Sequence record: NC_023610.1
DNA: 64,000 bases
Strand: one strand, 5' to 3'
The notes under the pieces are model-generated. The model was given only the letters and a program-made list of their open reading frames with translations, was not told where the DNA came from and did no database searches. This document shows positions 1,439 through 60,015 of the stretch, in pieces; the stretch's first letter is position 1; each line of letters opens with the position of its first letter. The translations under genes were made by a program, and so were the position numbers.

Positions 1439-1478
1439 CTCCTCCTGCCCCGAAAGGCAGGAGGAGGCTTTATGCTGC
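1439..1478. terminator. bidirectional hairpin terminator followed by TTTATGCTGC
   Basis: ctcctcctgcc-ccgaaa-ggcaggaggag 11-bp stem between convergent genes. Confidence 0.8.
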
Positions 1479-3299
1479 TTACACGCGGGAGATTAGCGTA
1501 GAGCCTTGTTTGGTGATGGTGATTTCACCGCTCATGCTCCAGTTGGTTCCACGACCGGTATCGTTGTAGACCTTGATGTAGTTCCAGCGACCAACCCCAA
1601 CAGCTGGCAGGTTGAATGGACCCACGTTCACGGTACCGGAGTTACGTCCGTTGTTACCGGTATCTTTGTACATCACCTGCGCATCACCAATACCGTCACC
1701 GCCACTGTAGACGTAGAAGTATTGACGTTCACCGGAACCGCAGTACACGTTCAGACCAGAAAGCGTACGCGCGAAGTTTGCACCCGGAATACGGTAGATG
1801 GCCGTTGGTGTACGGATAGCTCCGCCCTGAGACCAACCAGGGAGCGTCTGGTTACCCGTCTGCCCCTCTGCTTCGTTCATCATGCGCGTCACCAGCAGTG
1901 AACCACCACGTGGTGTCAGGTAACGGTCAGAAGCCGTACCTGCTTGCGCTTCCGCATCGTTAGCCGTCAGGAAGTTATTGACGTTACCCAACCCAACCTG
2001 AGCTTTCGTCACGTTGTGTGGGTTGTCCTGACGGTTGGCGTGGGCGTTAATCAGTGGCACTGCCAGCACGTTAATCGCTTGTGCAGTACGCAGCGGTGTC
2101 ATGTACGTGGCATTGTCCGCCCCGACTTGTGCCTGCGACTGACTGGCAATCCCGTAGTTCTGCACTGCACCCAAACCAACTTGTGCCGCCGTCACGCCGT
2201 GTGGGTTAGAGCGGTTGTTGATGTGGGCGTTCAACGGAATCAACGCCTGTTTCGAAACAGCCTGGGCTGTACGAAGAGGCGTCATGTACAGGACGTTACT
2301 GGTTCCGTTCTCAGCATCAAGCTGGGTGGCAATCCCGTAGTTCTCAACGGAGCCTAACCCGACTTGCGCTTTGGTTGTCGCATGGGGGTTGTTCTTATCG
2401 TTGATGTGGGCTTGAATCACCGGGGTGATGTTGAGCGCGGTGTACTTGGCGATTTCCTGCCAGGTAGTCAGTGGCGTCATGTACAACGTAGACGAGGTGC
2501 CCGCTTCCGCTTCCGCCTGAGTAGCAGGACGGTAGTTTTCCACAATCCCTAAGCCAACCTGCGCCTTGGTGGTATTGTGGGGGTTGTTCTTGTCTGCGAT
2601 GTGGGCGTTGAGGTTCGCTTCCACTTGCGCCAGGTGTTGCTCAATAGCCAGGCAACGAGCATCCAGGCGATTGACGTTGGCGTACAGGTCAGCATCCACT
2701 GCATCGAGCCGTGCCACTTCATCCAACATCTGCTGACGAACACGGTTGATGTATTCGTAGATAACGTTGTGCGAAGCGACGTCACCCTGAATCACCGCCC
2801 GCGTCAACTCTTCCAGCGCCAGCACCACGTACTCCAGGGAGTACAGGTCAGTGGCAGCATGTAAGTGCTTGCTCGGGTTGAAGGTCAGCGGTTTACCCCA
2901 GATGTTACCCCAGGAGACCACACGGTCGTCCTGCATCAAATCGTTCATCATTTTCACGATGGCGTCGATGCTGTAGGAGTAAGGTCCGCCCACAACCTGA
3001 TACGTCAGCAACACGGTATCGTAGTCGCGGTTCACCAGGTTCAGGATGTTGTACACCGGTAAACCCAGGTTCTGGGTGGCTTCAACGTACGGGTAAATCA
3101 GGGTGTAGTCGGTACCGAGGTCGAGTTTCTTCCCACTGGCTTTGTCAGTAACGACCATGGAGTCGCCGTAGAACGGACCACCAAAGGGCTGAAACGCTCG
3201 GTTAAACTGTTTATCGACGGTGCGCTCTTCACCGATTACTCGGTTAGCCGCACTCTGCCCCGTTCTGTCCAACGGGTACTTGGGTTTGGTTAAGGCCAT
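1479..3299 (-). CDS. tail fibre / virion structural protein with four H..NPH..TKAQVGLG repeats
   Basis: 606 aa; jumbo-phage fibre N-terminus (YPLDRTGQSAANRV), coiled coil, four ~60-aa repeats, distinct beta-rich C-terminal domain. Confidence 0.8.
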   Translation of the reverse strand: MALTKPKYPLDRTGQSAANRVIGEERTVDKQFNRAFQPFGGPFYGDSMVVTDKASGKKLDLGTDYTLIYPYVEATQNLGLPVYNILNLVNRDYDTVLLTYQVVGGPYSYSIDAIVKMMNDLMQDDRVVSWGNIWGKPLTFNPSKHLHAATDLYSLEYVVLALEELTRAVIQGDVASHNVIYEYINRVRQQMLDEVARLDAVDADLYANVNRLDARCLAIEQHLAQVEANLNAHIADKNNPHNTTKAQVGLGIVENYRPATQAEAEAGTSSTLYMTPLTTWQEIAKYTALNITPVIQAHINDKNNPHATTKAQVGLGSVENYGIATQLDAENGTSNVLYMTPLRTAQAVSKQALIPLNAHINNRSNPHGVTAAQVGLGAVQNYGIASQSQAQVGADNATYMTPLRTAQAINVLAVPLINAHANRQDNPHNVTKAQVGLGNVNNFLTANDAEAQAGTASDRYLTPRGGSLLVTRMMNEAEGQTGNQTLPGWSQGGAIRTPTAIYRIPGANFARTLSGLNVYCGSGERQYFYVYSGGDGIGDAQVMYKDTGNNGRNSGTVNVGPFNLPAVGVGRWNYIKVYNDTGRGTNWSMSGEITITKQGSTLISRV

Positions 3300-3362
3300 C
3301 GTAAGGCTCCCTTTGGGGTTACTTCAAGCGAATATAAAGCGGGTCAGTCTATAAAATGAGAC

Positions 3363-4457
3363 TTACGGCGGAGTGATGTTCGACAAGACACCGTCTTCCT
3401 TGGTGAAGTAGAGTTGCTTGTCCACGGTGGAACTGAACAGGCGACCCTGCGGCATCTCCATGACGGCCTTTGGGTTACCCGCAGCATACTTGACCCAGGC
3501 ACGGTTTTCGTACTTCCAGGTGGAGTTGTCACGGGCGTCGATAATCGGTTTATTGCTACCCGGTGACTGGAACACCTTGAAGGTAGCCTGTGGCTGACTG
3601 AATGCAATGTAACCAATCTTTGCCGGTTGCTGGAAGCGTTTCAGGTCAGCGCTGGTCAATGGGATGACCAAGGAGTTGGCTTCGCTGTACACAGTCGGTG
3701 AACCCACGTCAGAGGCCCAGATTTTAATCTGCGTTGCCGTACGTTCCACCTTCAGTCGCACAGGTCCTGCTGTACCCCAACTTCCCTTCCCGCCGTTGGT
3801 GGTAATCCCTTCCGCAGGAATCACTGAACCATCCGCATGGTGCAGGGTACCGGTCACGCCACCGATGTACTTCATGGTACCGGTCGGACTCGCCGGGTTC
3901 ATTACCACGTACACCGGGTCAATACGGTAACTGGCGTCATGGGGGACAACCGTGGAGAAAGTGCGGTACACCATCAACGACATCGGGACACCGTTCTCTT
4001 CCAGATACGCCAGGCACAGACCGATAGCATCGTCATCCCCATCTGCACTGGACAATTCGACTTCAAAGATGTAGCTGTCGTATTTGTCAGGCGACAAGAA
4101 GCCGGTGGTGTACACGGAGTTCACGGTGCAGACAATCGCATCGTTCGCTGAGTCGTAGTTCCACGCAGCGGCTTCGGTCGGGTCCGTCATCTTGTTGGTC
4201 CCGTTCAGTGAGATGCGCTCCCACTGGTTGAACACGGTTCCAAAGCTGGCACTCTTTTGGTCGTTAAGTTGAGCATCCGTGTTGACGATAGGATAAAAGT
4301 TTACCAGTGGTCCGGAAACTACGCTCGGCGTACCGTCCTCAACTTTGCTGAACAACGCATCACCCTTACTCCAGTTAGGGCGGTCAAGGAGGTCGTAAAT
4401 ACCGGTATTCACCAACACCTTAAATTGCTGGTAAAATTCCCGCAAACTAATTTTCAT
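3363..4457 (-). CDS. virion structural protein (fibre-associated, lectin-like)
   Basis: 364 aa in the fibre operon; C-terminal module resembles that of ORF 7794..10370. Confidence 0.6.
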   Translation of the reverse strand: MKISLREFYQQFKVLVNTGIYDLLDRPNWSKGDALFSKVEDGTPSVVSGPLVNFYPIVNTDAQLNDQKSASFGTVFNQWERISLNGTNKMTDPTEAAAWNYDSANDAIVCTVNSVYTTGFLSPDKYDSYIFEVELSSADGDDDAIGLCLAYLEENGVPMSLMVYRTFSTVVPHDASYRIDPVYVVMNPASPTGTMKYIGGVTGTLHHADGSVIPAEGITTNGGKGSWGTAGPVRLKVERTATQIKIWASDVGSPTVYSEANSLVIPLTSADLKRFQQPAKIGYIAFSQPQATFKVFQSPGSNKPIIDARDNSTWKYENRAWVKYAAGNPKAVMEMPQGRLFSSTVDKQLYFTKEDGVLSNITPP

Positions 4458-4501
4458 CGCAACACCCTTCTAAATTGGTCTCCGTCCGTGGAGAAGAGTC
4501 C

Positions 4502-7731: not shown

Positions 7732-7764
7732 GTTACACCCTTTATGGTTTAATCAGAATAAAGA

Positions 7765-7783
7765 GAGGGGACGAATCCCCTCT
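7765..7783 (-). terminator. intrinsic terminator
   Basis: Minus strand gaggggattcgtcccctc followed by tcttttatt. Confidence 0.7.
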
Positions 7784-7793
7784 TCTTAGATTA

Positions 7794-11709: not shown

Positions 11710-12294
11710 ATGTTCGAAAAACTGGAAGCGGCTGTCGGCAGTAAAGTGTTGTACGGGGTCATCTGGATTGCGACCCTGACCTTCACGTACTGGTTCGGCG
11801 GACACATTGAAAAAGAGAAGACCACGGCGGTCGACTCGGCGGTCTCGAGTGTCTCCACGCAATTGGGGACTATCCTGACCAATCAAATTAACACGCAGGT
11901 CGGTGGGATAAACGCCAGACTGCTTGGAGATACCAATGCGATTAACCTCATTCTTCAAGGTGGCTTCAAAAACAATGACGATGCTGATGCTCGTCTGCAT
12001 AACCTCACTAATGCTGGGGTGTACGTCAAAGCCAGTCCTGGTACCCCAGGCGAAACCAAAGCCGCTGGTACTGCCGCCGCTGGACCCGGCAATAATGCAA
12101 CCTATCGAGCCCAACTTTCAGACCAGGCTCGAGACTTTTTTGCAGGCGAAGCTAAACGCGCCAACCAATGTGCCGTTCAACTCAAAGGCGCTCAAGATAC
12201 CCTCTTGAGTTGGCAGCGCGCTGTTGATGAGTACAACCGAACTGTTGCTGACCCCAATGGTTACGACCGCGTTCAACTACCCGATAAAAAATAA
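11710..12294 (+). CDS. rz: i-spanin (Rz-like)
   Basis: 194 aa; single N-terminal TM (VLYGVIWIATLTFTYWFGG), periplasmic helical region, C-terminal Cys; contains a nested lipoprotein ORF. Confidence 0.8.
   Translation: MFEKLEAAVGSKVLYGVIWIATLTFTYWFGGHIEKEKTTAVDSAVSSVSTQLGTILTNQINTQVGGINARLLGDTNAINLILQGGFKNNDDADARLHNLTNAGVYVKASPGTPGETKAAGTAAAGPGNNATYRAQLSDQARDFFAGEAKRANQCAVQLKGAQDTLLSWQRAVDEYNRTVADPNGYDRVQLPDKK
11975..12208 (+). CDS. rz1: o-spanin (Rz1-like lipoprotein) fully embedded in the +1 frame
   Basis: MTMLMLVCITSLMLG-C lipobox, Pro-rich mature part (PQAKPKPLVLPPLDP), SD-like AAGGTGG upstream, 77 aa. Confidence 0.8.
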   Translation: MTMLMLVCITSLMLGCTSKPVLVPQAKPKPLVLPPLDPAIMQPIEPNFQTRLETFLQAKLNAPTNVPFNSKALKIPS

Positions 12295-12305
12295 AAAAAG
12301 AACCT

Positions 12306-12342
12306 CCTGAGGACCCGAAGGTCCTCAGGGGTTTTATGCTGC
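12306..12342. terminator. bidirectional terminator followed by TTTATGCTGC
   Basis: cctgaggacc-cgaa-ggtcctcagg; UUCG loop and U-tract on the minus strand. Confidence 0.85.
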
Positions 12343-15374: not shown

Positions 15375-15386
15375 ACGCGCCTCGAA

Positions 15387-15429
15387 GCATAAAAGAATGA
15401 CAGCGCTACCCGAAGGTAACGCCGCCATT
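15387..15429 (-). terminator. strand-specific hairpin followed by TTTTATGC
   Basis: Minus RNA aauggcggcguuacc-UUCG-gguagcgcugucauu is a 15-bp stem only if three G-U pairs are allowed. Confidence 0.8.
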
Positions 15430-15436: not shown

Positions 15437-16006
15437 TTAGACTTTTCGTCGCGTGGCCAGGAAGTCAAAGAAGGCCCCAACAAATCCACCACCTGCCTGG
15501 CTGTCACCTAACACCACCGACATCAGGTCACGGCGCTCTTTGTTGATTAAGCCCATGAACAACCAACCAATCCCCATCACAGGGCCAACCACCACCAGAA
15601 CCAGGAACCAGTCCGGGAACTCTTTGCGGTCGATGGACACCCAACAGATAGTGGCCGCGAACATCAGCGCCATGAGGGCGAGAACCACACACATGGTCAC
15701 ACCAATCACGGCCCGGACTTTCGCTTCCCGTTGGTATTCAGGGGACACGGTTAACGGCGGCACCGCGTTGGGTGTTTTCTCCACCGTTTTATCATCTACG
15801 TCCAGACTCATGAATTCCTCCTGGTGCTCTGGGGTCAAAAGAGCGACAGAATCAATCACGTGTTGCAACATTAAGCAGTCGCTACACGCGACGGCAAGCT
15901 CTTCGTATCCCTGGAGGGTTTCTACTAAGCTCTTGCCGTTACTGAGCTGAATCCCCGAGACGCCCAGCGTCGTCGGTTTCACTTGTAACAGCTCGCTTAC
16001 TTTCAT
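15437..16006 (-). CDS. two-TM membrane protein (holin candidate)
   Basis: 189 aa; soluble N-terminus, two hydrophobic helices, basic C-terminus (TRRKV). Confidence 0.55.
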   Translation of the reverse strand: MKVSELLQVKPTTLGVSGIQLSNGKSLVETLQGYEELAVACSDCLMLQHVIDSVALLTPEHQEEFMSLDVDDKTVEKTPNAVPPLTVSPEYQREAKVRAVIGVTMCVVLALMALMFAATICWVSIDRKEFPDWFLVLVVVGPVMGIGWLFMGLINKERRDLMSVVLGDSQAGGGFVGAFFDFLATRRKV

Positions 16007-17252: not shown

Positions 17253-17279
17253 GGGCAACCTCCTGAACAAAAAATAAAA

Positions 17280-17305
17280 GCGGGGGACTGTCCCCCCGTC
17301 TTTTT
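17280..17305. terminator. hairpin terminator
   Basis: cggggga-ctg-tccccccg (one extra C) flanked by A- and T-tracts. Confidence 0.65.
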
Positions 17306-19192: not shown

Positions 19193-19270
19193 CAGAGTAT
19201 TCTCCGGGTTGCTTATTAAAGGGTAGACACATAAGAAACCGGTGGGATGCTCTCCCACCGGCTCTTAGGG

Positions 19271-20119
19271 CTATGACGGCAAGTTGTAATGCAACACCAG
19301 ATACCCGGCAACGTTGTCGCACATGTTCTCGTCAAGACTGATAACTACACAGTGCGTGTACCAGGTACTGTTCGCTGGAACCGGGGCTCCGCTAATCAGA
19401 CCGTTCCACGTTACCAGTGAACCACGCAGGTTCCAGTCCTGTGGTGTTACCTCATTAACCCATGGCGTTTCCACCTTGCGGTTAAAGGAGTCCAGCGTTT
19501 CCCCGATGATTTCCTGTCCTTGTGGGAACAAGGCTTGCAGTTCATCGTAGGCGTACGAGAAGTCGAACCCGTACAGGAACAACGGACCTTGAATCTTCAC
19601 CGTCTGCATGGTTGGGTAGTTAATCCCGGCCAACTGATGGTTTGTCATCACGGTTTCCAACTGGAGCTTACGGCGACCGATATGTACGGTGAGCTTCCCG
19701 GTAAACGCCGGGTTGTTCTCACGCACCACGAGGTCAACGGCGTATGGCACCAGCTGCGGATTCAGGTAACCGTCGTAGATGTCAGCGGCCGTTAACTGGA
19801 ACCCAAAGCGTGCATTGATGTCCGATAACAGTTCAGACTTCTGGGTTTGTCCTTGCGGTGCCACCCAGACCTCAACGTCGGCAAAGATGACCCCGATGTC
19901 AGGACGGTTGTGGGTCAGTTCCCAGGTACCTTCGCGCCCGTACTCCGGAACACCAATCAGAGTGGACTTGGTATTCACTTCCGTATCGGAGGTAATGAAC
20001 GGTGTGATATCAATCAGCTTCACTTCTTCAGCGGTGAAGTTAATGTTGGGGTTATCCAACTTCAACTGGCGGAAAAAGAGTTGCCACGTGGGTAGATTGT
20101 AGTAGCCATCGGCAGTCAT
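19271..20119 (-). CDS. virion structural protein
   Basis: 282 aa; contains LETVMTNHQLAGINYP; C-terminal NVAGYLVLHYN. Confidence 0.65.
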   Translation of the reverse strand: MTADGYYNLPTWQLFFRQLKLDNPNINFTAEEVKLIDITPFITSDTEVNTKSTLIGVPEYGREGTWELTHNRPDIGVIFADVEVWVAPQGQTQKSELLSDINARFGFQLTAADIYDGYLNPQLVPYAVDLVVRENNPAFTGKLTVHIGRRKLQLETVMTNHQLAGINYPTMQTVKIQGPLFLYGFDFSYAYDELQALFPQGQEIIGETLDSFNRKVETPWVNEVTPQDWNLRGSLVTWNGLISGAPVPANSTWYTHCVVISLDENMCDNVAGYLVLHYNLPS

Positions 20120-22421: not shown

Positions 22422-25199
22422 ATGGGCTACAAGAAAAATAAAGTTGCGCCAACGTCGGTACGGGTAAAAAGTCAGAACACCGACTTCTTCCACCGTAACC
22501 CGCGCGCAGCTGTCGTCGCCTCCAAAATGATTGCTGACCGCTACAGCGGACAGAACAAACCTGGCCACGGTGTCGACGTACCGAACGAAAGCATCTTTGA
22601 CGTCATCATCAACCGCCGTGGGCGGAAGAACCTTGACGCCGAAACTATCATGAACTTGCAGCCGGACATCAAGCTGATTAAAAGCCTGATTACCTCCATC
22701 GTCATGTCACCGATTGACATGGACTCCGGCGGCGTAACCTTTAAAATGACGGAATCCACGGAACTCCCAGGGGTGGTCTATAACCCGTTGCTGGAAGTCA
22801 TCCGTTCGCACTTCACCAGTTACTACGACCTCAACGAAGTGTTACCGTTGGCCGTCGGCGAAGCGCTCTTCGACCAAGGTGCCTCCATCCGCGTGGTGGT
22901 TCCCGAAGCCGCGGTCGACGACATGATTAACGGAACCACTCAGCGCGTCAGCACCGAAGACTATATTAACTCCCGTCTGGACGCTGACCGCCTGACGTTC
23001 CGTCCCCAAGGTTTCCTGGGTCCGGTAATGTCTGGCTGGAAAGACAATAAACGTATTCCGTTTGATGCCCACGCCGCGCAGAAGAAAGTGTCACTGGAGT
23101 CTGCCTTTACTATCCAGGCGTCCGCCACGAACACGCGCTTCAACAGCATGGCTACCATCACCGACAATATCGAAATCCTGACGGTTCCCATACTAAAAGA
23201 GCGCACACGTGCCCGCATGTTGCGTAATGCTCAGATGGCGCGGTTGTATCAGGCGAACCGGTCGGTCGCTACGGAAAGTAACCAGGCACAAATCCGTACG
23301 TTAGCAGGAACGTTGTACAAACAAACGAACGGGCGCAGTCAGGTAAAGAACGTGGAAATCATGTCCGCGGCACATTCTGCTTCCCGCTCCTCAATCGGTC
23401 ACCCAATGGTCATGAAGTGGTCCTCCGACTCCCTGGTTCCGGCGTATGTCCCGGGGGAAGAAGAGAAACACCTGGGTTACATCGGGGCGATTGATGAGAA
23501 CGGTCACCCAATTGATGTCATGGAAGAGATGAAACAAAACATCTCGAAAGGCATGGGAAACCTGGATAACCAACAGGCGATGAACCTGACCTCGACGTTG
23601 ATTCAGCAAACGCAGATTCTTCAGTCGGGTTACAACGTCGACATGGACAAGCAGTCCGCTGCGGAACGTTTGCGTCTCTTCACTCAGGTGTACGAAGAGA
23701 ACATCCTGAACCGTATCAAGTCGGGTATCTACGGGCACAACGTGAAGCTCGGTGACAACGAATCCTTCTACAAGGTGATGTTGGCTCGCCACTTCGCAAA
23801 CAACCACATCCACCTGGTGTTCATCCCAGCCGAACAGGTCGCGTACTTCGCGTACGACTACGACAAGAACGGTATGGGTAAATCCCTGCTGGATGACGTG
23901 AAGCAGGTCAGTACCCTGCGTGTCATGACCACGTTTGCGAACTTCATGTCGGCGATTGCCAACGCCGTGGGCCGTACCAAAGTTACACTCAACATCGACC
24001 CGCGTTCTCCGGACCCGGAAAAGGATTACCATATCCTGATGGACGAGTATCTCCGTGGCCAGTCTAACGCCAGTCCAACTGACGTGACCTCGGCAGCTGA
24101 GATGTTCCGTACCATTCGTCAGATGGGCGTGAACTTTGAAGTGACCGGTAACGACCGTATCCCGAACACCACGGTACAGGTTGACTCTTACCAGTCGCAG
24201 AAACAAATGATTGACCCGGAGTTTACCAACGAACTGAAAACCCAGCAGTACATGGGCCTGTTCGTTACCCCTGACATGGTGGACATGACGCAGCAAGGTG
24301 ATTTCGCGATTACCCGCTGGACATCAAACCAACTGTTCGCTAAGCGTATCAAAACTATCCAACAGGCGACGTGTCGCCATGGGAAGAAACTGGTCACGGC
24401 ATATACCCTGTCGTCCGGCGAATTGATTAAGCGCTTGCAGCAGGAAATCGACGGGATTAAAGATAAGCTTCCGGAGAAGTACAAGATAACGGAATCACAG
24501 GGTAACGTTATCCGGCACCAAGAGCTGATTGAAGACTTCATGGAAGACCTCATGCTCGAATTGCCAACGCCGTCCAGTACCAAGTACCAGACGCAGCTGG
24601 AAGAAATGAACAAGTACTCCGGCCTCCTTGACGAAGGTATCCGTCATTACGTGACCAACGAACTGTTGGGCGGCGCAATGGCAGATGAAGACAGTTCTCA
24701 CGTTGACCTGATGGTGAACTCCATTAAGTCGTACATGATGCGCGAGTACATGGCGCGTGAGGATATCTTGCCTGAGTTGCAGGAACTGGTGCGTAAAGGT
24801 ACCGAGGACAATCCGTCACTCGACCTCTCCAAAGAGTACATGGTGCACATGACGAACATCATGAACAACCTGGGGGATTGGGGTTCAGCGGTGAAACTGC
24901 GTCGTGAGAAGTATCTGGAAATGCTGCAATCCAAGAACCCGGATTACGCCGAGGCGATTGGTAGCGCAGGAGCCAGTGCGGACTCTTCATCTTCGGCTGA
25001 CAGCAGTGACGACAGCGGGGATGACGAGTTCGACTTCGACAGCGAGCCACCAGGAATGGATGAGTTCGATGACGGTGGGGATACCGATGCGGAAGAGTCT
25101 CCGGATGAGACAGACACCGATACCACCGGGGAAGCGGACATGGCGGCAGAAGAAGAACCTGCACAGGAACCAGCAGGGGACACGGAACCAACGCCATAA
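22422..25199 (+). CDS. portal protein (phiKZ gp129-like)
   Basis: 925 aa; G.SLLDD, FANFMSAIANAVGRT and conserved position; S/A-x-E sites in the N-terminal part; long acidic tail. Confidence 0.75.
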   Translation: MGYKKNKVAPTSVRVKSQNTDFFHRNPRAAVVASKMIADRYSGQNKPGHGVDVPNESIFDVIINRRGRKNLDAETIMNLQPDIKLIKSLITSIVMSPIDMDSGGVTFKMTESTELPGVVYNPLLEVIRSHFTSYYDLNEVLPLAVGEALFDQGASIRVVVPEAAVDDMINGTTQRVSTEDYINSRLDADRLTFRPQGFLGPVMSGWKDNKRIPFDAHAAQKKVSLESAFTIQASATNTRFNSMATITDNIEILTVPILKERTRARMLRNAQMARLYQANRSVATESNQAQIRTLAGTLYKQTNGRSQVKNVEIMSAAHSASRSSIGHPMVMKWSSDSLVPAYVPGEEEKHLGYIGAIDENGHPIDVMEEMKQNISKGMGNLDNQQAMNLTSTLIQQTQILQSGYNVDMDKQSAAERLRLFTQVYEENILNRIKSGIYGHNVKLGDNESFYKVMLARHFANNHIHLVFIPAEQVAYFAYDYDKNGMGKSLLDDVKQVSTLRVMTTFANFMSAIANAVGRTKVTLNIDPRSPDPEKDYHILMDEYLRGQSNASPTDVTSAAEMFRTIRQMGVNFEVTGNDRIPNTTVQVDSYQSQKQMIDPEFTNELKTQQYMGLFVTPDMVDMTQQGDFAITRWTSNQLFAKRIKTIQQATCRHGKKLVTAYTLSSGELIKRLQQEIDGIKDKLPEKYKITESQGNVIRHQELIEDFMEDLMLELPTPSSTKYQTQLEEMNKYSGLLDEGIRHYVTNELLGGAMADEDSSHVDLMVNSIKSYMMREYMAREDILPELQELVRKGTEDNPSLDLSKEYMVHMTNIMNNLGDWGSAVKLRREKYLEMLQSKNPDYAEAIGSAGASADSSSSADSSDDSGDDEFDFDSEPPGMDEFDDGGDTDAEESPDETDTDTTGEADMAAEEEPAQEPAGDTEPTP

Positions 25200-25217: not shown

Positions 25218-25253
25218 AACGCCACCGGGTTTCCCCGGTGGCGTTTATGCCGC
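25218..25253. terminator. bidirectional terminator followed by TTTATGCCGC
   Basis: aacgccaccggg-tttc-cccggtggcgtt; long U-tract on the minus strand. Confidence 0.85.
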
Positions 25254-26462: not shown

Positions 26463-26512
26463 ATGCTCTCCAGATGGCATAACGCTGGGAGGTTACCCTC
26501 CCAGCTATGGGT

Positions 26513-31565: not shown

Positions 31566-31608
31566 AAAAAAAGAAAATAAAGCCCGGGAGCCCCGAAGGG
31601 CTCCCGGT
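31566..31608 (-). terminator. MCP transcript terminator
   Basis: ccgggagccc-ttcg-gggctcccgg followed by tttattttcttttttt. Confidence 0.9.
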
Positions 31609-34031: not shown

Positions 34032-34093
34032 TCTTCTCTTTCCTTCAACGTTGAAAGGTTTTGGTGTCAAGTACTTGACGAGTGATATTATCA

Positions 34094-34102
34094 CATACCA
34101 TA
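34094..34102 (-). promoter_or_regulatory. putative late promoter of MCP (tandem TATG)
   Basis: TATGGTATGTGATAAT about 65 nt upstream of the MCP start. Confidence 0.5.
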
Positions 34103-34115
34103 ATAGGCGCTAGTA

Positions 34116-34691
34116 CTAGCGCCCGCTCACGGCGTGACGGAGATAGCGTCTGAAAACCTCAAGTTCTTTGAACTCGGGGAATTCCGCAATCCCACTTAAC
34201 GATTCGATAACGGCATTGTAAAATGCACGGTCATCTTGGTACACCGGTGTAGTGCTCCCTATAAGAAGCAGGGTATTCGCGTCGACACGCACCGGTGTGT
34301 AAAACTCGGCATCGAGCGGATTGGTTTCTAACACACCAATAGCAGAATCTCCACCGGTCACTTCTTTCAGCTTCGCGTCGCGGTACAATTTCTCCTTCAA
34401 CGCTTCAATTGCTTTCTCGTGCTCGAGGTAGAACGCTGCGTTTTCATCGCAGTCTGCTATGGTATGGAAGTCGGAAAAAACTTTATCTGTCAGACGATGG
34501 AGGTCGCGTTGGACGAGCGTGTAAATAAATACTTCGTCCAGTGTTACTATAGACGCTTGACCTTCACACGCCACCAATTTGGGAAAAGACAGCACGTCGA
34601 GGTACGTACAGTTTTTGGTTTCGCTAATTGCTGATGCGAGCCAAGACGGCACAATACCTACGCGGAGCTGCTTGAGCAACTTGTTTCGCAT
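34116..34691 (-). CDS. virion/head protein (positional phiKZ gp119 equivalent)
   Basis: Likely start MRNKLLKQ (SD GGAG); lies between dnaB and MCP. Confidence 0.7.
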   Translation of the reverse strand: MRNKLLKQLRVGIVPSWLASAISETKNCTYLDVLSFPKLVACEGQASIVTLDEVFIYTLVQRDLHRLTDKVFSDFHTIADCDENAAFYLEHEKAIEALKEKLYRDAKLKEVTGGDSAIGVLETNPLDAEFYTPVRVDANTLLLIGSTTPVYQDDRAFYNAVIESLSGIAEFPEFKELEVFRRYLRHAVSGR

Positions 34692-36308: not shown

Positions 36309-36382
36309 CCGGTACCGTAAAGCAAAAGCTTACGACCAGCCAACCTCAACCAACCGACAACTGACTTCTTAGACTCGCGGTG

Positions 36383-36439
36383 GCATAAATGCCAGACTGG
36401 ACTGGGTATCGTCCCAGTCCAGTCCCGCGGGCTTTATGC
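36383..36439. terminator. symmetric bidirectional element GCATAAA-hairpin-TTTATGC
   Basis: 12-bp perfect stem gactggactggg/cccagtccagtc between convergent genes. Confidence 0.85.
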
Positions 36440-36443: not shown

Positions 36444-37268
36444 TTACGCTTTCCCGGTGACGGCTATCCGCTGACACCAGTAGTAGTTACTGAAGTACAC
36501 ACCGTACAACAACCGTTCAATCCTTTCGTACCAACCGTCGTTCTTGAACTGGGTTTGTTGCGCAGTGGTCAGACTTACGTTCAACCACCCTTTCAGGGAA
36601 CGCAGGTGGGCATCCATCATCCCTTGCGCCTTCCAGGTTTCCGGTTTAGGGTAAACGCTGGCCGGTGCAGTGGCGTTCAGATTAAGGCTTTCCCCACTGG
36701 CGGTGACGAAGACATTTCCCGGTTTACCCACGTGACGGGCTAGAGCCGCCACAAACGCACTCAGGACGTACTTTGACCCCGCAGCAATATAATCCCTGTC
36801 TGGATAGAGTGGACCGGCTCCTGAGGCCGCCCAGGTCGTGAGAGGGGCGGTGAACAACAGGTTATTAAAGATATCCTCGCTCCGGTAGCGGGGAACCAGC
36901 AACGGAACGTTCCCGTTATGGTAAGCCCGGTCCCAGAACCGTTCACTGACCCCCTCCTGCATCACCCCGTCAACGATAACCTCAATCTTCCGATGAGGGA
37001 GCGCCAACTTCACTTCATGGGCTGCTTCCACCGCCGCAAAGTGAATCTCGTTATCCCGGATACCACCCTGAACCAGAGCCGTCCCGATGTACGCATCGTT
37101 CAAGAGCAACACTTCGGCCTCATTGAACTCAACCCCGGTACGACCAAAGAACGGTTGACGAACCAACAGGTTTTTGATGTACGCCGCATTTTCAGGGGCG
37201 CGGCTGATGACGCCGTCAACCATGGTCAGGAAGGAGGCGACGTTAGCGACGTTGTATGGATAAATCAT
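36444..37268 (-). CDS. hypothetical/virion protein
   Basis: Likely start MIYPYNV just after the upstream stop; about 274 aa. Confidence 0.7.
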   Translation of the reverse strand: MIYPYNVANVASFLTMVDGVISRAPENAAYIKNLLVRQPFFGRTGVEFNEAEVLLLNDAYIGTALVQGGIRDNEIHFAAVEAAHEVKLALPHRKIEVIVDGVMQEGVSERFWDRAYHNGNVPLLVPRYRSEDIFNNLLFTAPLTTWAASGAGPLYPDRDYIAAGSKYVLSAFVAALARHVGKPGNVFVTASGESLNLNATAPASVYPKPETWKAQGMMDAHLRSLKGWLNVSLTTAQQTQFKNDGWYERIERLLYGVYFSNYYWCQRIAVTGKA

Positions 37269-37270
37269 GG

Positions 37271-38614
37271 TTACTCCGAATTCTTCGACAGGTACATTAC
37301 CATCCCCGCCACTGACGTCTGGGTTTGGTCGGAAAGACCGGGACGTTCGAGAGCCCACTGTTCATCAATCTGGAACATGGTCCCACCGTACTTCTTAATC
37401 TTTCCGCCGATATCGTGGTAGACCTGCACCGGCATCCCCGGGAACACCAGGTCCGCATTCGAGTTCTGCCAGGTGGTGGTGAACAACTGACCGTCATTCG
37501 CTGCCAGCTTCGACATTTCAAACGGCACGTTGTTGGTTGCCTTCACACTGGACATGCCCGCAATGGCAAACCCATCCTCACGCGTGGAGTCCTGAAACTC
37601 CGCCATGTACTTACTGCGGTTCAGCAGTGCGGTGTTTTCCGTTTGGGCAGTAGGTGCAGCCATCAGCTCGTCGGCCCGAATGAAACGTACCCCGTTACCG
37701 TATTCAAAATTCCCCGAGACCGAGATATCCTGAATAGAGGGGGAGCCCGTACAAACCACGTACAGTGTATCCCCATCCTGGTACGACGTGTTGTCCAGTA
37801 ACGGTACCACGTTGGTCGGCACCTGGAACACCACAAGCTTCTTCACTGCGGTCTTCAGGTGGTTCGTCCGGTACAGCGGATAGATGTACCAAATCCCGTC
37901 CTGGATAAACGACCCCAACCCTTTATCGTAAAGCCCGTTCTCATTCTCCTGAATCCACCCAGGGACGTCAATGAGCGGGACACTGTGCGGCACCACAAAG
38001 TCCGGGGTAATCTCGCCTTTGTTCACCGACGGAACCATCTCGAATCCCTTCAAGTAAACCGACTGTTCCCCTTTCTCTGATTTCGCCGCCGTTAAGACCA
38101 ACGCCTTCAGGAAATCCTCGTTGCTGTTATAGCGGGAGATACCCCCGCCGGAACGCACGGACATGAACTCCGCCACCGGGTCAACCAACTGCACATGGAA
38201 GTAGCGCATGTCGTCCTTCCCGTCCAGGTAAGTCCCCGACGTCATCGGGTTACCGTGTGGTAAGGTAGCATCGGCGTTGTCCACCAGGAAGGCACGGTAC
38301 GTGTACGACGTGGTAATACCCCCAATCACGTCCACCCCGGATACCGGGTCGACCTGAATCTTCTGGAGCACGCACTTCAGGTTATCACGCCGTGCGTACA
38401 GTACATCTCGGTAATCCTTCACTGAGGTGGCCACCTGAATGGTCATGTCCCTACAGAAGCTGCTGACGTAATCGGCCGAGCTCCATTTCTCAATCACCGC
38501 TATCGCCGTGGCACTCCCGTTAGCACTCACAAAGGTGGCTTTGTGGCGAAAGCGCGGACCCCGCGCTTTAAGGAGGATGGCGTGAATGGTGTCGTACAGC
38601 AAGTTTGGGTTCAT
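37271..38614 (-). CDS. virion tail/baseplate hub-like protein
   Basis: 447 aa; YRAFL, GLYDKGLGSFIQ, WYIYPLY and FPGMPV motifs. Confidence 0.65.
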   Translation of the reverse strand: MNPNLLYDTIHAILLKARGPRFRHKATFVSANGSATAIAVIEKWSSADYVSSFCRDMTIQVATSVKDYRDVLYARRDNLKCVLQKIQVDPVSGVDVIGGITTSYTYRAFLVDNADATLPHGNPMTSGTYLDGKDDMRYFHVQLVDPVAEFMSVRSGGGISRYNSNEDFLKALVLTAAKSEKGEQSVYLKGFEMVPSVNKGEITPDFVVPHSVPLIDVPGWIQENENGLYDKGLGSFIQDGIWYIYPLYRTNHLKTAVKKLVVFQVPTNVVPLLDNTSYQDGDTLYVVCTGSPSIQDISVSGNFEYGNGVRFIRADELMAAPTAQTENTALLNRSKYMAEFQDSTREDGFAIAGMSSVKATNNVPFEMSKLAANDGQLFTTTWQNSNADLVFPGMPVQVYHDIGGKIKKYGGTMFQIDEQWALERPGLSDQTQTSVAGMVMYLSKNSE

Positions 38615-42109: not shown

Positions 42110-42143
42110 GGTGCACGCGCTCCTCTAAGCAGTCTCATAGAAA

Positions 42144-42184
42144 GCAGCATAAAGCCCTCTCCTGCCAAAAAGCAGGAGAGGGGC
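42144..42184 (-). terminator. hairpin followed by TTTATGCTGC
   Basis: Minus strand ccctctcctgc-tttttg-gcaggagaggg, then ctttatgctgc. Confidence 0.75.
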
Positions 42185-42188: not shown

Positions 42189-43631
42189 TTACTCGGCTAA
42201 GCCAACGTAGTCGCCGTTAAGCGGCAGGAAGGTCGGTTCTACATCAATCGTCACGTCGTTCAGGCCCAGCATCTGGAGCGCCGTACGCACCGCGACAGTT
42301 ACGCTTTCGCCCACCACTTCACCGGCCACGTTAAAGGTGTTGCTCATGGCGTGGAAGCTTGGGGATTTCAGTTCACGTTGAATGAACGTCACCAGACCTT
42401 GTTCTACTGCTGCGACACGGTTGGTGCCACGCAGCACAACGCGCAGTGCACTGGTACCTTTCACATTGAAGTAGAAGGCATCACTTGCGCTTGCGACGGC
42501 TGTGGTGTTTGATTTTTCTGCGAGTGGCGCGGTTTGGGCCAGCTTTGCGAGCTCGGAGCGAATCGACAAAGGCTTTCCCGCTGGAGGAATCTCCACCTCC
42601 GGGGCATTCGGACCACCCACCGCACGTTTACCCGCTACCGACGCCAACCAGATACGCCATGAACCACCGTTACCGGCCAGAGGGAATTTGACCCATTCCA
42701 GTTTACCGTTCAGGTAATGGAGTGCGCCTTCCATGTGGACCACGTCTTTTGGCAGGTAGGTACCTTCGAACGGGTCGCGTTTCGGGTCGATGATGATACC
42801 ACGGAAACGAACGTCGTACGCGCGGGCTACTTCTTCGCGGTCACGGTCGTAGTTGAAGTCTTCCGGTTTGATAGCGGCGGGGCTCAGTGCTACCGGGGCA
42901 GGTGTTCCCTGTGGGTCACCCAGTTGGGTTTCACGGGTCAGCGCATTAGACGCGCTGTCTGCTTCACCGTAGGCTGCCAGGATTTCAGCAATCTTCGGAG
43001 CCGGGTGTTCAACGACCTGGTCGAGCTGAGGAATCTGGAAGCCTGGGAAGGTCAGACTGAACATGGTCTGAATATCCGCGGCGGTTAACATGCGCACACC
43101 TGGGTTCTGACCTTTGGCGTCCTGGGCCGGAGCAGCCTGAAGCATTTCCCACTTCTCAGCCGCAGCATTGATGCGGGCAATCGCGTTGTACACGTTAGTG
43201 GCACGAGCAATCTGACCACGTTCCAGCGGCAGGCTGAAAATCAGACCATCCGCAGCATCACGCAGTTGGAACACCGCCGCCTGGGAATCACCCACGGCCA
43301 CGAACTTCAGTTGCGCGTCACCTTCACCTACTACGGTGTCGTTCAGTTCAGCCAACAGGAGAGCGTGCGGGTCAGTGACCTCCTCCAGCTGTACGTCGCT
43401 TAACAGTGCAGCTTCGTTCAGTGCATCGGTCAGCATCTCAAGGATAGCTGCATCAGGCGTTGACTTCAGGAAATCTTTAGCGCGGACAGTAATGCCATGT
43501 CCGGCGTCACCCAGACGGAAAGACGGAAGAGCGGTAACCAGTTGCTCACGTGTCACTTCGTCAAAGAGTTGGAGCTCTGGGCTGTCAATCAACTCGCCCT
43601 GACTGTTAAATACCGTAAAGATAATTTTCAT
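42189..43631 (-). CDS. hypothetical (likely head) protein
   Basis: Likely start MKIIFTVF; about 480 aa, acidic and Ala-rich. Confidence 0.75.
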   Translation of the reverse strand: MKIIFTVFNSQGELIDSPELQLFDEVTREQLVTALPSFRLGDAGHGITVRAKDFLKSTPDAAILEMLTDALNEAALLSDVQLEEVTDPHALLLAELNDTVVGEGDAQLKFVAVGDSQAAVFQLRDAADGLIFSLPLERGQIARATNVYNAIARINAAAEKWEMLQAAPAQDAKGQNPGVRMLTAADIQTMFSLTFPGFQIPQLDQVVEHPAPKIAEILAAYGEADSASNALTRETQLGDPQGTPAPVALSPAAIKPEDFNYDRDREEVARAYDVRFRGIIIDPKRDPFEGTYLPKDVVHMEGALHYLNGKLEWVKFPLAGNGGSWRIWLASVAGKRAVGGPNAPEVEIPPAGKPLSIRSELAKLAQTAPLAEKSNTTAVASASDAFYFNVKGTSALRVVLRGTNRVAAVEQGLVTFIQRELKSPSFHAMSNTFNVAGEVVGESVTVAVRTALQMLGLNDVTIDVEPTFLPLNGDYVGLAE

Positions 43632-43694
43632 TCTTAATGTTCCATTTAGAAAGGAAAGGAATGGTAGGTTGTTCAAACCATTCCCTGGTGGTGT

Positions 43695-43737
43695 AAAAAA
43701 AGAAAATAAAACAAGGGGGCCGAAGCCCCCTTGTTCA
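43695..43737 (-). terminator. intrinsic terminator
   Basis: acaaggggg-cttcgg-cccccttgt followed by a U-tract. Confidence 0.85.
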
Positions 43738-43756
43738 AGCACTTACCGCAGACGAA

Positions 43757-45121: not shown

Positions 45122-45197
45122 TACAAATTGAGAAAGGTAGGGAAAACGTTTTCCCTACCATTTAACCAGAATCCTCGAACGCATGAGCGCTATAGGA

Positions 45198-46574
45198 TTA
45201 GTACGCGCTCAGAGAACGGTTGCAGTAGTTCAGCGTGTTTTTACCAACGCTCATGAACACACCGCTCAGTTTCGCAGACGGCTCGTCAATCAGCAGACGC
45301 GCAGCTGGGATGATGCGACGGATGTCGGACAGAATCGCAGACATGCCTTCTTTTGCATCACCGTCGTTGGCTTCACGCTCAACGTGGTCGCCAGCCTGGT
45401 CAAGGTTCTTGTGCGCTTCTTCGCTCTTAGCGAATTTACGCTTGTAACCTTCGATGATGTCAGCCATCTTGATGACTGCATCGCAGATGCTGATAATCTG
45501 CTGGGTGGTCGCGGTATCAACGCTGACAGAAGAATCATCAACGTCTTTCGCCAGTACGCCGGTCACAGTCGTTTTACGACGGGCCAGGGCATCAGCAGCG
45601 CCTTTGATTTTGTCTGCTGCGCCAGTAGCGCCAGCGCCTGCCGGTGCGAAGCACACGAAGATAGCCTGGTTACCCGGCATCTGCTCGGTACGACGCAGAG
45701 TCAGACCTTCGCCGATTTCGCCGAAGCCAGTGGCTTTCGCATCCGGAACGTCTTTGCTGAACAGCTGAGTATCAGGGTTCAGGTCAGCCGCCGCTCTCAC
45801 CAGGTTGTCACCCAGAGAAGACAGGGACGCTTCGTCGCTGAACTTAGCAGCTTCGATAGCTTTCAGGATGTTGTCCGCAACTTCGATGGACTTAGGCTGT
45901 ACGGTTTCGAACAGCTTACCAGCGGTGTCAGCAGCAGTGCTCAGCGCAGTGGCCAGACCCTGTGCACCCGGGAACTTACCGTCGATGCCCAGCACTTTGT
46001 TCGCTGCAACAACTTCGATTTTCTTCTCTTTGGCCACAGACGTGGTTTTCTGAGCGCGTTCACGGATAGACTGTGCGTTGGATTTCAGACGCGGAGCCGC
46101 AGCCCAGGTCTTTTCCCACCAGGTTTTCAACTTGGCGCGCATTTTCTTGAACCAGGCTTTCAGCTTCTGCCACCAGTTTTTGATGGTAGCTTTCAGGCCT
46201 TCAACCGCTACGCGAGTAGACTGCGCAGAACGGCCAGAGTCAGAGAACGATTCAACCGATACAGACATCGCATCTTCGATACCGTGTACGCGGTTCAGGA
46301 TGTTAAGCAGACGAGCAGACTCAACGGAGATACCACCGTTTTCCTGGGCTTCTTCCAGGATTTCGATGACTTCCGGATAAGTCTCAGTCATTGCTTCAGT
46401 CAGCATTTCGCCTTCCGGCTCAACTTCGTTCAGCTGTGCTTCGACTTCATCCATTTCTTCCAGGGCAGTACGGGTGTCCAGTTCAATCTGGGCAGCCTGT
46501 GCCTGTTCCTGGTCGATGGAGCCACCGTAGTTTTCAACAGACGGTGCGCCAAGTGTGCGAGCTAATCTTCCCAT
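45198..46574 (-). CDS. inner-head protein, paralog 2
   Basis: SVE/AVE sites, then EGLKATIKNWWQKLKAWFKK; same architecture as paralog 1. Confidence 0.8.
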   Translation of the reverse strand: MGRLARTLGAPSVENYGGSIDQEQAQAAQIELDTRTALEEMDEVEAQLNEVEPEGEMLTEAMTETYPEVIEILEEAQENGGISVESARLLNILNRVHGIEDAMSVSVESFSDSGRSAQSTRVAVEGLKATIKNWWQKLKAWFKKMRAKLKTWWEKTWAAAPRLKSNAQSIRERAQKTTSVAKEKKIEVVAANKVLGIDGKFPGAQGLATALSTAADTAGKLFETVQPKSIEVADNILKAIEAAKFSDEASLSSLGDNLVRAAADLNPDTQLFSKDVPDAKATGFGEIGEGLTLRRTEQMPGNQAIFVCFAPAGAGATGAADKIKGAADALARRKTTVTGVLAKDVDDSSVSVDTATTQQIISICDAVIKMADIIEGYKRKFAKSEEAHKNLDQAGDHVEREANDGDAKEGMSAILSDIRRIIPAARLLIDEPSAKLSGVFMSVGKNTLNYCNRSLSAY

Positions 46575-53325: not shown

Positions 53326-53372
53326 GCAGCATAAAGGCCCTGGTACCCTTCGGGGTACCAGGGTTCCTTTTA
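53326..53372. terminator. GCAGCATAAA followed by a bidirectional hairpin
   Basis: ccctggtacc-cttcgg-ggtaccaggg followed by a U-rich tract on the plus strand. Confidence 0.85.
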
Positions 53373-54740
53373 TTTCTTCATTCTGCTTTCGAGGTACTTC
53401 TTCTCTTCCGCAGTGACGTTCTTCAGGATATCAGACGCATCCATGTTCGCTTTCGCCGCTTCGCGTTGCGCCACATCGAATTCAAACGCCAGGCACGCTG
53501 ACACCTTATCCGCGAACTGACGCATCAGATGCAGTAACCAGCCCGACAGCAACACACAGGTGTTGAAGATTTGCTGGAACTCGCCCAGGGTACGGATGAT
53601 GTCCTGGAGCAGAGTGAAGTCTGACATGCGACTTTCGTGGAAGGTGTTGCGAATCTGTTCGGTGTCCTTCAGCATCTTCTCCGCATACTTCGAAATCTCT
53701 TCCTGCGTTTTGATGATGCCTTCTGGAATCGACAGCATGTTGCGGCTGTGACCTGGACCACCCACGATACGGGCAATACCTTCTTGCAGTTTACGGATAG
53801 ACTTCGAATCAGTCGCGATACTTTGCTTCTGGTCGTTCTTCTCCGCCAACTTGGCGCGGAAGTCCTTCAGACCGTTCACGATGTCCGCCGGTTCACTTCC
53901 CGCCACCTTAACCTGGTTCTTCGCCAACATGCGCTTGAGGCCCGGGAAAGAACGGTCAATCGCCGTGTCTTCCTGAATACGCTCCAGACGCAGTTTCACC
54001 TGGCCCGCACCCACGGTACCTTTCTCACGCAGATAACCTGAACAGGTTTCTTCGCCCACCTTGTAGCTTTCGCTCAAGACTTTCGCGTAGTTGTTCAGGT
54101 CACCCAGCATCCCAAAGATATCCGCAGACAGCCCGTTCGGATTCAGCAGGTCACGCGTTAACCCGGTGTAGTGTTCGAGTAACCCATCGGTTAAGCGCTT
54201 GTACTGTTCCGCACTGGTCAGGACCTTTTCCACTTCCTGGTCCCCGACTTTGCTGCGGATGTTATCCGACCCTTTGGCAGAAGCAGACCCGCCCGTGGAA
54301 CTGCCCATCAAGGCACCCGCGTCGTCCTTCCCTTTCCCAAAGAAGCCCAGTACCCATTTAATCAACTTGTACAGGAACGCTGCGCCAGCCACCAGGACTG
54401 CTGCAATGATACCTGCACGTTTACCGTCGATGTCTTCAATAGCAACCTGCATGTTGGTGCGAGACCGACGCTGCGTGTAGCTTTGAACCGGGTACAGTTC
54501 ATTCAGGGGACCGGCGAACGATTCAACGGCCGCCATGGTATCGCGGTTCACCCCGCGCGCTTTGACATCGGCACTCATGCGCTCAAGTTCGCTAATCAGC
54601 GGCTCGGCGTTGTTGCGCTGGACTTCATACTCAGAATAAATCTGGTTGATTTCCATCACCATGGTGCGTAGGTCTTTACCGTCAGCGGCGATGAAGTTGA
54701 AAATCTCCTTCACCGGCTTGACGACTTGTTCGTTATCCAT
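53370..54740 (-). CDS. head protein with propeptide and hydrophobic helix
   Basis: AVES/AIED sites followed by AGIIAAVLVAGAAFLYKLIKWVLGFF. Confidence 0.7.
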   Translation of the reverse strand: MDNEQVVKPVKEIFNFIAADGKDLRTMVMEINQIYSEYEVQRNNAEPLISELERMSADVKARGVNRDTMAAVESFAGPLNELYPVQSYTQRRSRTNMQVAIEDIDGKRAGIIAAVLVAGAAFLYKLIKWVLGFFGKGKDDAGALMGSSTGGSASAKGSDNIRSKVGDQEVEKVLTSAEQYKRLTDGLLEHYTGLTRDLLNPNGLSADIFGMLGDLNNYAKVLSESYKVGEETCSGYLREKGTVGAGQVKLRLERIQEDTAIDRSFPGLKRMLAKNQVKVAGSEPADIVNGLKDFRAKLAEKNDQKQSIATDSKSIRKLQEGIARIVGGPGHSRNMLSIPEGIIKTQEEISKYAEKMLKDTEQIRNTFHESRMSDFTLLQDIIRTLGEFQQIFNTCVLLSGWLLHLMRQFADKVSACLAFEFDVAQREAAKANMDASDILKNVTAEEKKYLESRMKK

Positions 54741-57543: not shown

Positions 57544-57681
57544 GGTTCCGTGGCCTCGTCAATAAGAGATATACAGGGTTGAGTACACAGAATAGGCTCT
57601 GTCGTATAGAGGTGGTAATAAAAAACGTCAGGGCACCTTGTTATAGAGACTTAGAAAATACGTTGGAAAGGAATAACCTCC

Positions 57682-59439: not shown

Positions 59440-59445
59440 GGAGTC

Positions 59446-59973
59446 GTGATGGGGTCGTTAATCCAACGCGCTTTACAGCAGAGTAACGGGGACGTGGTGA
59501 TTCAGACCATTCGTGAACGCTCGGACCCGGTACTGCGCCACTACCTCCAACCCATTATGAAACTGTACCAACAGCTGGACTACGAGATGTCAGCGTTCCA
59601 CGAGCAGGCCTTTGGCGTGTCCGGTGAAAGCTACCAGTTCAGTGAAGGAGAGCTCTTCGATGAGTTAGACCAGGGGAACATTCTGCTGGTCATTCATGAT
59701 TTGTCGGGTGCTCTTGGGTTGGCACAGGTGAAGGTGGAAGAGGAAGGGACACGGACGAAAGAGTTGGTCATCCGTTACCTGGTGGTTGGTGAAGAGCAAC
59801 GCGGGAAAGGTTACGGTACTCACCTGTTAAACAAGGTGATGGCCATTGCCGAAGAAGAAAAGGTAGACCACATCACACTCGGGGTCTACGTGCAGAACGA
59901 AGGAGCCATGCGTTTGTACAGCAAATTCGGGATGCGTCCGTACTACCAGGCGTTGGTACGCAAAAATAAATAA
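59446..59973 (+). CDS. GNAT-family acetyltransferase
   Basis: LVVGEEQRGKGYGTHLL acetyl-CoA motif; N..A.RLYSKFG. Confidence 0.9.
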   Translation: MMGSLIQRALQQSNGDVVIQTIRERSDPVLRHYLQPIMKLYQQLDYEMSAFHEQAFGVSGESYQFSEGELFDELDQGNILLVIHDLSGALGLAQVKVEEEGTRTKELVIRYLVVGEEQRGKGYGTHLLNKVMAIAEEEKVDHITLGVYVQNEGAMRLYSKFGMRPYYQALVRKNK

Positions 59974-59979
59974 CAGGTA

Positions 59980-60015
59980 CCCTGCTTCCCTTTTGGGGAA
60001 GCAGGGCCTGTATGC
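59980..60015. terminator. bidirectional hairpin followed by (G)TATGC
   Basis: ccctgcttccc-ttttg-gggaagcaggg between convergent genes. Confidence 0.8.

Follow-up and report, generated by a model that had tools for sequence, protein, structure and literature searches.

Hairpins with a conserved TTATG-type tail at gene ends of Erwinia phage PhiEaH1 are probable intrinsic terminators of the phiKZ class

A GC-rich hairpin followed directly by TTTATGC[T/C], or by a close variant, recurs at gene ends in the last 64,000 nt of the genome of Erwinia phage PhiEaH1 (NC_023610.1, 218,339 bp, genus Iapetusvirus), the stretch analysed here and called the window. These elements are probably, at a probability that we put at about 0.82, factor-independent (intrinsic-type) terminators of a class conserved in the phiKZ-like nucleus-forming jumbo phages. 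The class is already known and experimentally supported, and it is here extended to PhiEaH1. Position w of the window corresponds to position w + 154,339 of the record. Genes annotated in the record include those of a nuclear shell protein and the tubulin PhuZ, together with several split beta/beta' genes of RNA polymerase, and PhiEaH1 is therefore a phiKZ-like, self-transcribing, nucleus-forming jumbo phage (a chimallivirus) with its own virion and non-virion multisubunit polymerases. In phiKZ, 61 intrinsic terminators have been mapped by ONT-cappable-seq, each a stem-loop and then a "TTAT region" (Putzeys et al. 2024, PMC10914365), with the motif BCCYCCCCHWWDGGGRRGGBYTTATKYYGT (PMC10914365). 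The version of this tail in which K is G, TTTATGC[T/C], is present at about one third of PhiEaH1 terminators genome-wide. Motif A of the terminators of phage 201phi2-1 was described by its authors as "strongly resembling" the phiKZ motif, and the 201phi2-1 terminators block a downstream reporter in uninfected cells to a degree equal to or better than the lambda terminator (PMC11512511). The PhiEaH1 elements are of the same kind as those with mapped 3' ends in phiKZ; that PhiEaH1 transcripts end at them, and which polymerase reads their tail, we infer by analogy.

An earlier reading of the window (the original prediction) had noticed that stems at a series of gene junctions are flanked by TTTATGC or its complement, and this co-occurrence stands up well to shuffled controls. 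With a cut-off for strong hairpins of dG <= -14 and 60 dinucleotide-preserving shuffles of the window as controls, all eight copies of TTTATGC on the two strands of the window lie directly 3' (0-9 nt) of a strong hairpin, compared with 0.03+-0.18 hairpin-adjacent copies among the 4.2+-2.1 copies in a shuffled window. Strong hairpins themselves number 40, against 18.8 in the shuffles, and those with a TATG tail number 13, against 0.43+-0.59. In the full PhiEaH1 record, which was used for all genome-wide tests, a strong hairpin precedes TTTATGC in 14 of 21 copies. The same tail emerges from an unbiased k-mer test, made with no prior motif on the 16 nt around the 3' end of every hairpin with dG <= -14: TATG ranks top among the 4-mers (27 observed, 2.3 expected), and TATGC and TTATG rank top among the 5-mers with an enrichment of about 34-fold (TATGC, 20 observed and 0.58 expected). 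Spacing is also constrained, TATG beginning -1 to +7 nt from the end of the stem and falling to background level farther out; counted in 10-nt bins from the stem end, 21 TATG starts are in the first bin and 2-5 in each subsequent one. At the junctions named in the original prediction, the folds have energies of -21 to -37 kcal/mol and z-scores of -3.9 to -7.0 relative to dinucleotide shuffles.

The position of the elements is that expected of terminators. Every sense-strand TATG tail in the window is downstream of a same-strand stop codon, and the distance from stop codon to element is -8 to 19 nt, with a single exception of 87 nt after the helicase gene. Sixty-six hairpins genome-wide are found just past a same-strand stop codon, and their tails comprise 21 of the TATG class, 20 TATT, 13 other T-rich and 12 other sequences; the published core TTATKYY is present in 31 of these 66 tails (0.2 expected), with 141 copies in the entire genome. 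Of about 22 tails in the window, 12-13 are of the TATG type and 6 of the TTATT type. The TATG tails are concentrated in this structural arm of the genome (12 of 19, against 9 of 47 elsewhere, p=0.001), which hints at a link with late transcription. A simple rule by which TATG tails mark late genes and T-run tails mark early genes is only partly true: several structural genes end with TTATT or T-run tails. An origin as a mobile repeat, similar to REP or MITE elements, was rejected because the stem sequences are unrelated and the recurrence is limited to structure and tail.

All the sites named in the original prediction exist, and at each of them the motif follows the 3' side of the hairpin on the coding strand of the gene ending at that point. 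Among the convergent junctions, TATG is present on both sides of the hairpin at 1439 and 36395, and a T-run or TTATT is found on the opposite strand at 12306, 25218, 53338 and 59980. The element at 1439-1476 (+) follows the baseplate assembly gene gp188 (453-1433) and consists of a hairpin at 1439-1466 (-29.5 kcal/mol, z -6.5) and the tail TTTATGCT at 1469-1476; the minus side of this hairpin (1427-1466, tail TTATGTT at 1427-1433) ends gp189 (1479-3299) and had been overlooked. Between the helicase gene (34740-36308, +) and gp218 (36444-37358, -), the bidirectional element at 36382-36438 contains a hairpin at 36394-36425 of -36 to -37 kcal/mol, and the inverted pair of motifs claimed at 36383-36439 is indeed there, with TTTATGCC at 36382-36389 on the minus strand and TTTATG at 36433-36438 on the plus strand. 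The site at 12306 (+) lies after gp195 (11710-12294) and occupies 12300-12340, with the hairpin at 12300-12335 and the tail TTTTATGCT at 12332-12340; on the minus side, where gp196 ends, the tail is a T-run. After gp208 (22422-25199), the element at 25218-25251 (+) has the tail TTTATGCC at 25244-25251 and again a T-run on the minus side. The site at 53338 (-) extends over 53328-53363 after gp232 (53370-54740), with the tail TTTATGCT at 53328-53335, and its plus side (53336-53365) ends gp231 with a TTATT tail. At 59980-60015 (+), after gp237 (59446-59973), the tail is TATGC at 60011-60015 (the GTATGC variant), and the minus side (59979), which ends gp238, has a TTATT tail.

The following elements at tandem junctions are on the minus strand. 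After the gene at 15437-15982, the site at 15396 occupies 15386-15429, with G-U pairs in its stem and the tail TTTTATGCT at 15386-15394. This stem had been thought to form only on the strand where the motif follows it; the asymmetry is real, with -24.3 kcal/mol on the minus strand and -12.0 on the plus strand, but the plus-strand stem is weaker rather than absent. The element at 19229-19264, after gp206 (19271-20119), has the tail TTATGT at 19229-19234 and corresponds to the variant TTATGTG named at 19240. Following gp223 (42189-43742), the site at 42154 occupies 42146-42182 and has the tail TTTATGCT at 42146-42153. A further tandem-junction element, new here, is found at 26476-26505 after gp212 (26513-28675), with the tail TTATGCC at 26476-26482. 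Also missing from the original prediction were six sister terminators of the TTATT type. Two of them are the TTATT sides of the 53336 (+) and 59979 (-) hairpins, and four are on the minus strand: 7759-7788 after gp193, 17276-17303 after gp203, 31584-31607, which is 124 nt past the major head protein gene, and 43709-43736 after gp224. A weak hairpin with TATTATGGTATG at 34099-34124 (-), upstream of the major head protein gene and likewise unlisted before, has a fold that is not significant (z -1.35). A lax scan for Rho-independent terminators, requiring at least 5 T in 8, accepts the elements at 1439, 12304, 15429 and 19264, and the tails have only 3-4 U before A-U-G-C. An Rfam scan of the 64-kb window found no family.

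How do these elements compare with those of phiKZ, where transcript ends are known? Published phiKZ end-mapping tables (bioRxiv 10.1101/2023.10.13.562163) were compared with our own list of phiKZ elements, for 3' ends in 80.3-168 kb and for 5' ends in 118-180 kb. Of 39 hairpin+TATG elements, 14 have a same-strand 3' end mapped no more than 3 nt to either side of the tail G (-3 to +3), in most cases at +1 or +2. A mapped start is found within 3 nt at only 1 of 28. In that single exception, P075, TATG begins 11 nt past the stem and the mapped end of the terminator is 10 nt upstream of the start. A covariance model (R2) was built from 28 phiKZ elements only, with a hand-given 8-bp structure, the automatic consensus having captured just 5 bp. 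In a search space of 128 kb, 5 of its 6 best window hits are PhiEaH1 elements, with weak E-values of 0.045 to 6.5; the elements at 1439, 25218 and 53328 are hits of the phiKZ-trained model, and that at 42146 is the best of them (18.9 bits).

The tail is conserved in relatives. TATG ranks first among the tail 4-mers in the 80-180 kb region of phiKZ (42-45 of about 100 hairpins), in Erwinia phage Special G (15 of 31), in Serratia phage Moabite (9 of 33) and in the metagenomic relative L010 (IMG/VR contig IMGVR_UViG_3300042923_001207; 4 of 16), and third in Serratia phage PCH45 (5 of 32). It is not enriched in the control Ackermannviridae phage Bue1, which infects the same host without possessing these polymerases (fewer than 3 of 23). 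The tail has been kept from the Erwinia and Serratia phages to the Pseudomonas phages across a range of 37% to 55% GC. At the helicase-gene junction, hairpin and TATG are both present in PhiEaH1, L010, Moabite and PCH45, and the stems are mostly unrelated. The terminator of the head gene has a TTATT tail in PhiEaH1 (31584-31607) and a TATGC tail in its L010 orthologue; the two tail versions therefore interchange, as does the K of the published motif. The GenBank record of Moabite labels the homologous hairpins as terminators. A closer genome, L009, is 98.6% identical to PhiEaH1, and the differences are too few for a comparison of compensatory changes.

Like the phiKZ terminator, the PhiEaH1 element is a GC-rich stem-loop directly before TTAT-K-YY, it follows stop codons, and it is two-sided at convergent junctions; the two phages have the same two multisubunit polymerases, and the model trained on phiKZ finds the PhiEaH1 copies. 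Unlike the stems of phiKZ, which are mostly near-identical, of the CCCTCCC type and 8 bp long, those of PhiEaH1 are 10-15 bp long and varied in sequence, and the tails differ in that phiKZ favours TTATGT/C-YGT and PhiEaH1, as judged from sequence alone, favours TTTATGC-Y. Motif A of 201phi2-1 comes from a phage of a different genus and host, whose terminators were demonstrated to function in vivo, and is likened to the phiKZ motif by description. The arrangement is reminiscent of the bidirectional Rho-independent terminators of bacteria, where one palindrome between convergent genes, A-rich upstream and U-rich downstream, acts on both strands. Bacterial terminators differ in that their U-tract continues, whereas here a short stretch of 3-4 U gives way to a conserved A-U-G/U-Y-Y. 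Termination at such an element would involve formation of the hairpin in the nascent RNA, and the weakness of the U-A-U hybrid, combined with pausing at the U-G step, would release the RNA approximately 1-2 nt past the G; for a convergent gene pair, a single hairpin would serve both strands. The original prediction had offered, as one of two options, a sequence-specific terminator tail for the phage RNA polymerase. A terminator with a conserved tail is what the data favour, since the tail matches the phiKZ motif (PMC10914365) and phiKZ 3' ends map -3 to +3 nt from its G. Specific reading of the tail by the phage enzyme is less certain: 201phi2-1 terminators stop transcription in uninfected host cells too, and the phage enzyme is therefore not strictly needed.

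Several observations weigh against intrinsic termination as the whole account. Conservation of G-C-Y past the U-rich part goes beyond what a canonical intrinsic terminator needs, and the tail may have another reader. No 3' end is mapped at 25 of the 39 phiKZ elements, many of which face antisense, with little transcription arriving. The training copies of the covariance model were picked for having TATG, and its individual E-values are weak. At the tandem junctions at 15396, 19236 and 26484, there is no other promoter-like motif between the hairpin and the next gene. Either leaky termination or a restart at the TATG of the tail could apply at these three junctions, and leakiness explains them equally well.

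The original prediction was correct that TATG is the core of the phiKZ late promoter (PMC7598289, PMC4666361, PMC12809450). It occupies -3 to +1, and all four bases are required in vitro but are not sufficient (PMC7598289, PMC4666361). GP123, the beta-like subunit of the phiKZ non-virion RNA polymerase, has a pocket under its lobe that holds the non-template TATG in a 2026 structure (PMC12809450). The orthologue of GP123 is encoded in the window by gp213 (28706-30370, -), which matches PDB 7ogp_E, "PHIKZ123", with E=3.5e-58; 9 of 16 listed pocket residues are identical, at an overall identity of 27%. Because a GP123 orthologue with these residues is present, it is very probable that TATG acts as a start signal in PhiEaH1 too. 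Only one tetranucleotide is more strongly avoided in the PhiEaH1 genome than TATG/CATA, which stands at 0.49 of the second-order Markov expectation. With protein sequence and codon usage controlled, TATG within genes reaches 0.50 (sense strand, z -15.9) and 0.53 (antisense strand, z -8.8) of the expected frequency, and its density in intergenic DNA is 3.5-fold that within genes. Hairpin-free TATG, often as TATGTA, is found 18-90 nt upstream of many PhiEaH1 genes, several divergent junctions included, and the P119L region of phiKZ likewise reads TATGTA. The flanks of the two kinds of TATG differ. In the tails, TT comes before in 16 of 30 and C after in 20 of 30, whereas the hairpin-free copies upstream of genes are followed by C in 7 of 35 (p=0.0002 relative to the tails), the commonest next pair being T-A (8 of 35).

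Could the tail therefore be a promoter as well as a terminator? The other option in the original prediction was that of terminator-coupled late promoters, in which the tail TATG would also be a start for the non-virion polymerase, re-initiating transcription at tandem junctions and producing antisense RNA at convergent ones. We consider such dual-function modules quite unlikely, and as a general rule the coupling is unsupported. In their favour, TATG is a necessary promoter core held by GP123, and 9 of 16 pocket residues persist in PhiEaH1; the twofold avoidance of TATG on both strands of genes and its intergenic density would suit an autonomous signal; at 15396, 19236 and 26484, no promoter-like motif other than the tail TATG precedes the next gene; and P075 of phiKZ starts just past a mapped terminator end. 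Against this, TATG tails show no enrichment at tandem positions, where a downstream co-directional gene follows 8 of 21 TATG tails and 25 of 45 other tails (p=0.29), and for 13 of the 21 the nearest 150 nt hold no co-directional gene. TATT, in which the obligatory G is missing, makes up half of the tails, and the C at +2 of the tails sets them apart from the promoter-like copies. The evidence from phiKZ points the same way: just 1 of 28 TATGs next to a hairpin is a mapped start, the tail-sheath promoter P078 is located 43 nt beyond the tail TATG of terminator T065, and, although 27 tails point antisense in the 100 kb between 80 and 180 kb, only 4 antisense RNAs with a defined start have been reported for the whole phiKZ genome. 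Thus the tails share with the phiKZ late promoter a tetranucleotide, and the phage encodes an orthologue of the subunit that binds it, but the tail TATG has other flanks, comes after a hairpin, frequently lacks a gene that it could drive and can be replaced by TATT. The identity of the tail and start TATG may nevertheless be functionally meaningful, although the data do not need it to be. In a version that we regard as possible but doubtful, both would be one signal for the non-virion polymerase, read as start or stop according to context. A GP123-type pocket would capture TATG in the elongating bubble and pause the enzyme 1-2 nt past the G as the hairpin forms, so that TATG capture would take the place of the extended U-tract found in ordinary terminators; a preceding hairpin and following pyrimidines would specify a stop, and a following T-A without a hairpin in front would specify a start. 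The phiKZ ends mapped 1-2 nt past the G and the avoidance of TATG on two strands are compatible with this, but the pocket is incomplete in the transcribing complex (PMC12809450) and TATT tails work equally well.

Two further explanations were weighed. If the hairpins were RNA processing or stability elements, the stem would shield the 3' end, the single-stranded UUAUGC would be a ribonuclease cut site, and the ends would arise by cutting. The conserved tail is single-stranded, A/U-rich and beside the stem, as this would require, and 3'-end mapping by itself cannot separate termination from processing. It is very unlikely all the same, given that the 201phi2-1 elements stop a downstream reporter in uninfected cells at least as well as the lambda terminator, that a hairpin with a U-rich tract and ends 6-9 nt past the stem is the geometry predicted for intrinsic termination, and that avoidance of TATG on the antisense strand too fits a signal at the DNA level. 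Alternatively, the elements could be generic Rho-independent terminators of the host type, with TTTAT as the U-tract and ATGC either coincidental or derived from neighbouring stop and start codons. A simple terminator scan does pick up several of them, some tail ATGs are annotated start codons, and some adjoin the stop codon of the convergent gene. This is extremely unlikely, however, when TATGC has a 34-fold enrichment in the tails, above every pure T-word, when such a tail is lacking in the Ackermannviridae phage that shares the host, and when the tail is conserved between Erwinia/Serratia and Pseudomonas phages despite their spread of GC content.

As intrinsic terminators, the elements allow the ends of transcription units to be marked reliably from sequence alone in PhiEaH1 and related phages, some of which are considered for fire-blight control, and they help to fix gene starts that have been annotated on the ATG of a tail. 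Erwinia, Serratia and metagenomic chimalliviruses of 37-55% GC share the terminator syntax known from two Pseudomonas phages. TATG is not mentioned in the phiKZ and 201phi2-1 terminator papers (PMC10914365, PMC11512511), and the overlap between terminator tail and late-promoter TATG, together with its avoidance elsewhere in the genome, appears to be undiscussed in that literature. If functional, the link between tail and promoter TATG bears on how a four-base promoter can be specific, and a context-dependent start/stop TATG, if true, would explain the twofold purge of TATG from both strands of genes.

Other observations concern TATG outside the terminators. The avoidance of TATG/CATA extends to Moabite, PCH45 and phiKZ and is far milder in the control Ackermannviridae phage (0.85, rank 32). 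Of the 22 genomic copies of TATGTA, 14 are intergenic, an 8-fold enrichment. At divergent junctions of the window, the hairpin-free TATGs at 423 (+), 10418 (-), 34721/34726 (-) and 63000 (-) are 0-32 nt upstream of annotated gene starts, and these are candidate promoters of the non-virion polymerase. At some tandem junctions, a second TATG follows 3-12 nt after that of the terminator tail and looks like a separate promoter abutting the terminator; at 42136-42139 (-), the second TATG is 12 nt beyond the tail of the 42146 terminator. In phiKZ (record 94320-94335, L014), the tail TTATGC is followed at once by TATGTAA. Upstream of genes outside the window, ATTTTTTAC is followed 15-16 nt on by TATG at record positions 3775 (-), 24177 (-), 81654 (-) and 136589 (-), an arrangement that resembles the published description of phiKZ middle promoters, which have an AAanTTACc motif at about -24. 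The exact pattern TTTTAC-N15-TATG is present at 5 sites only, none of them in the window.

Some annotated gene starts coincide with these signals. For gp211 (window position 26480) and gp002 (record position 1781, outside the window), the annotated start codon is the ATG of a terminator-tail TATG; in gp211, translation seems to begin in reality 18 nt farther on, at an in-frame ATG that has a GGAGAG ribosome-binding site. In the minus-strand stretch 34031-34103, TATGGTATG contains the GTG (34094) annotated as the start of the head gene, and the block TATGGTATGTGATAAT near the head-gene start is conserved in L010. The true start is likely to be the ATG at 34031, which is preceded by a GAAGGA ribosome-binding site. 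The TATGs at the head-gene start are probably its promoter, and the weak hairpin at 34099-34124 more likely belongs to the head-gene promoter region than to a terminator.

With regard to neighbouring genes, the two on the minus strand at 60730-62130 and 62123-62965 are annotated as RNA polymerase beta subunits. Unlike gp213, their products had no match among solved structures, and they may be part of the virion polymerase set. A protein search with gp223 found PhiEaH1-type phages only. The gp225 annotation (45183-46565, +) falls wholly within gp226 (45198-46574, -) on the opposite strand, and it is probably spurious because a codon-usage caller passed it over. The relative L010, whose head protein has 68% identity, has GATC at 0.05 of expectation, by far its lowest word, which suggests strong avoidance of a host system that targets GATC.

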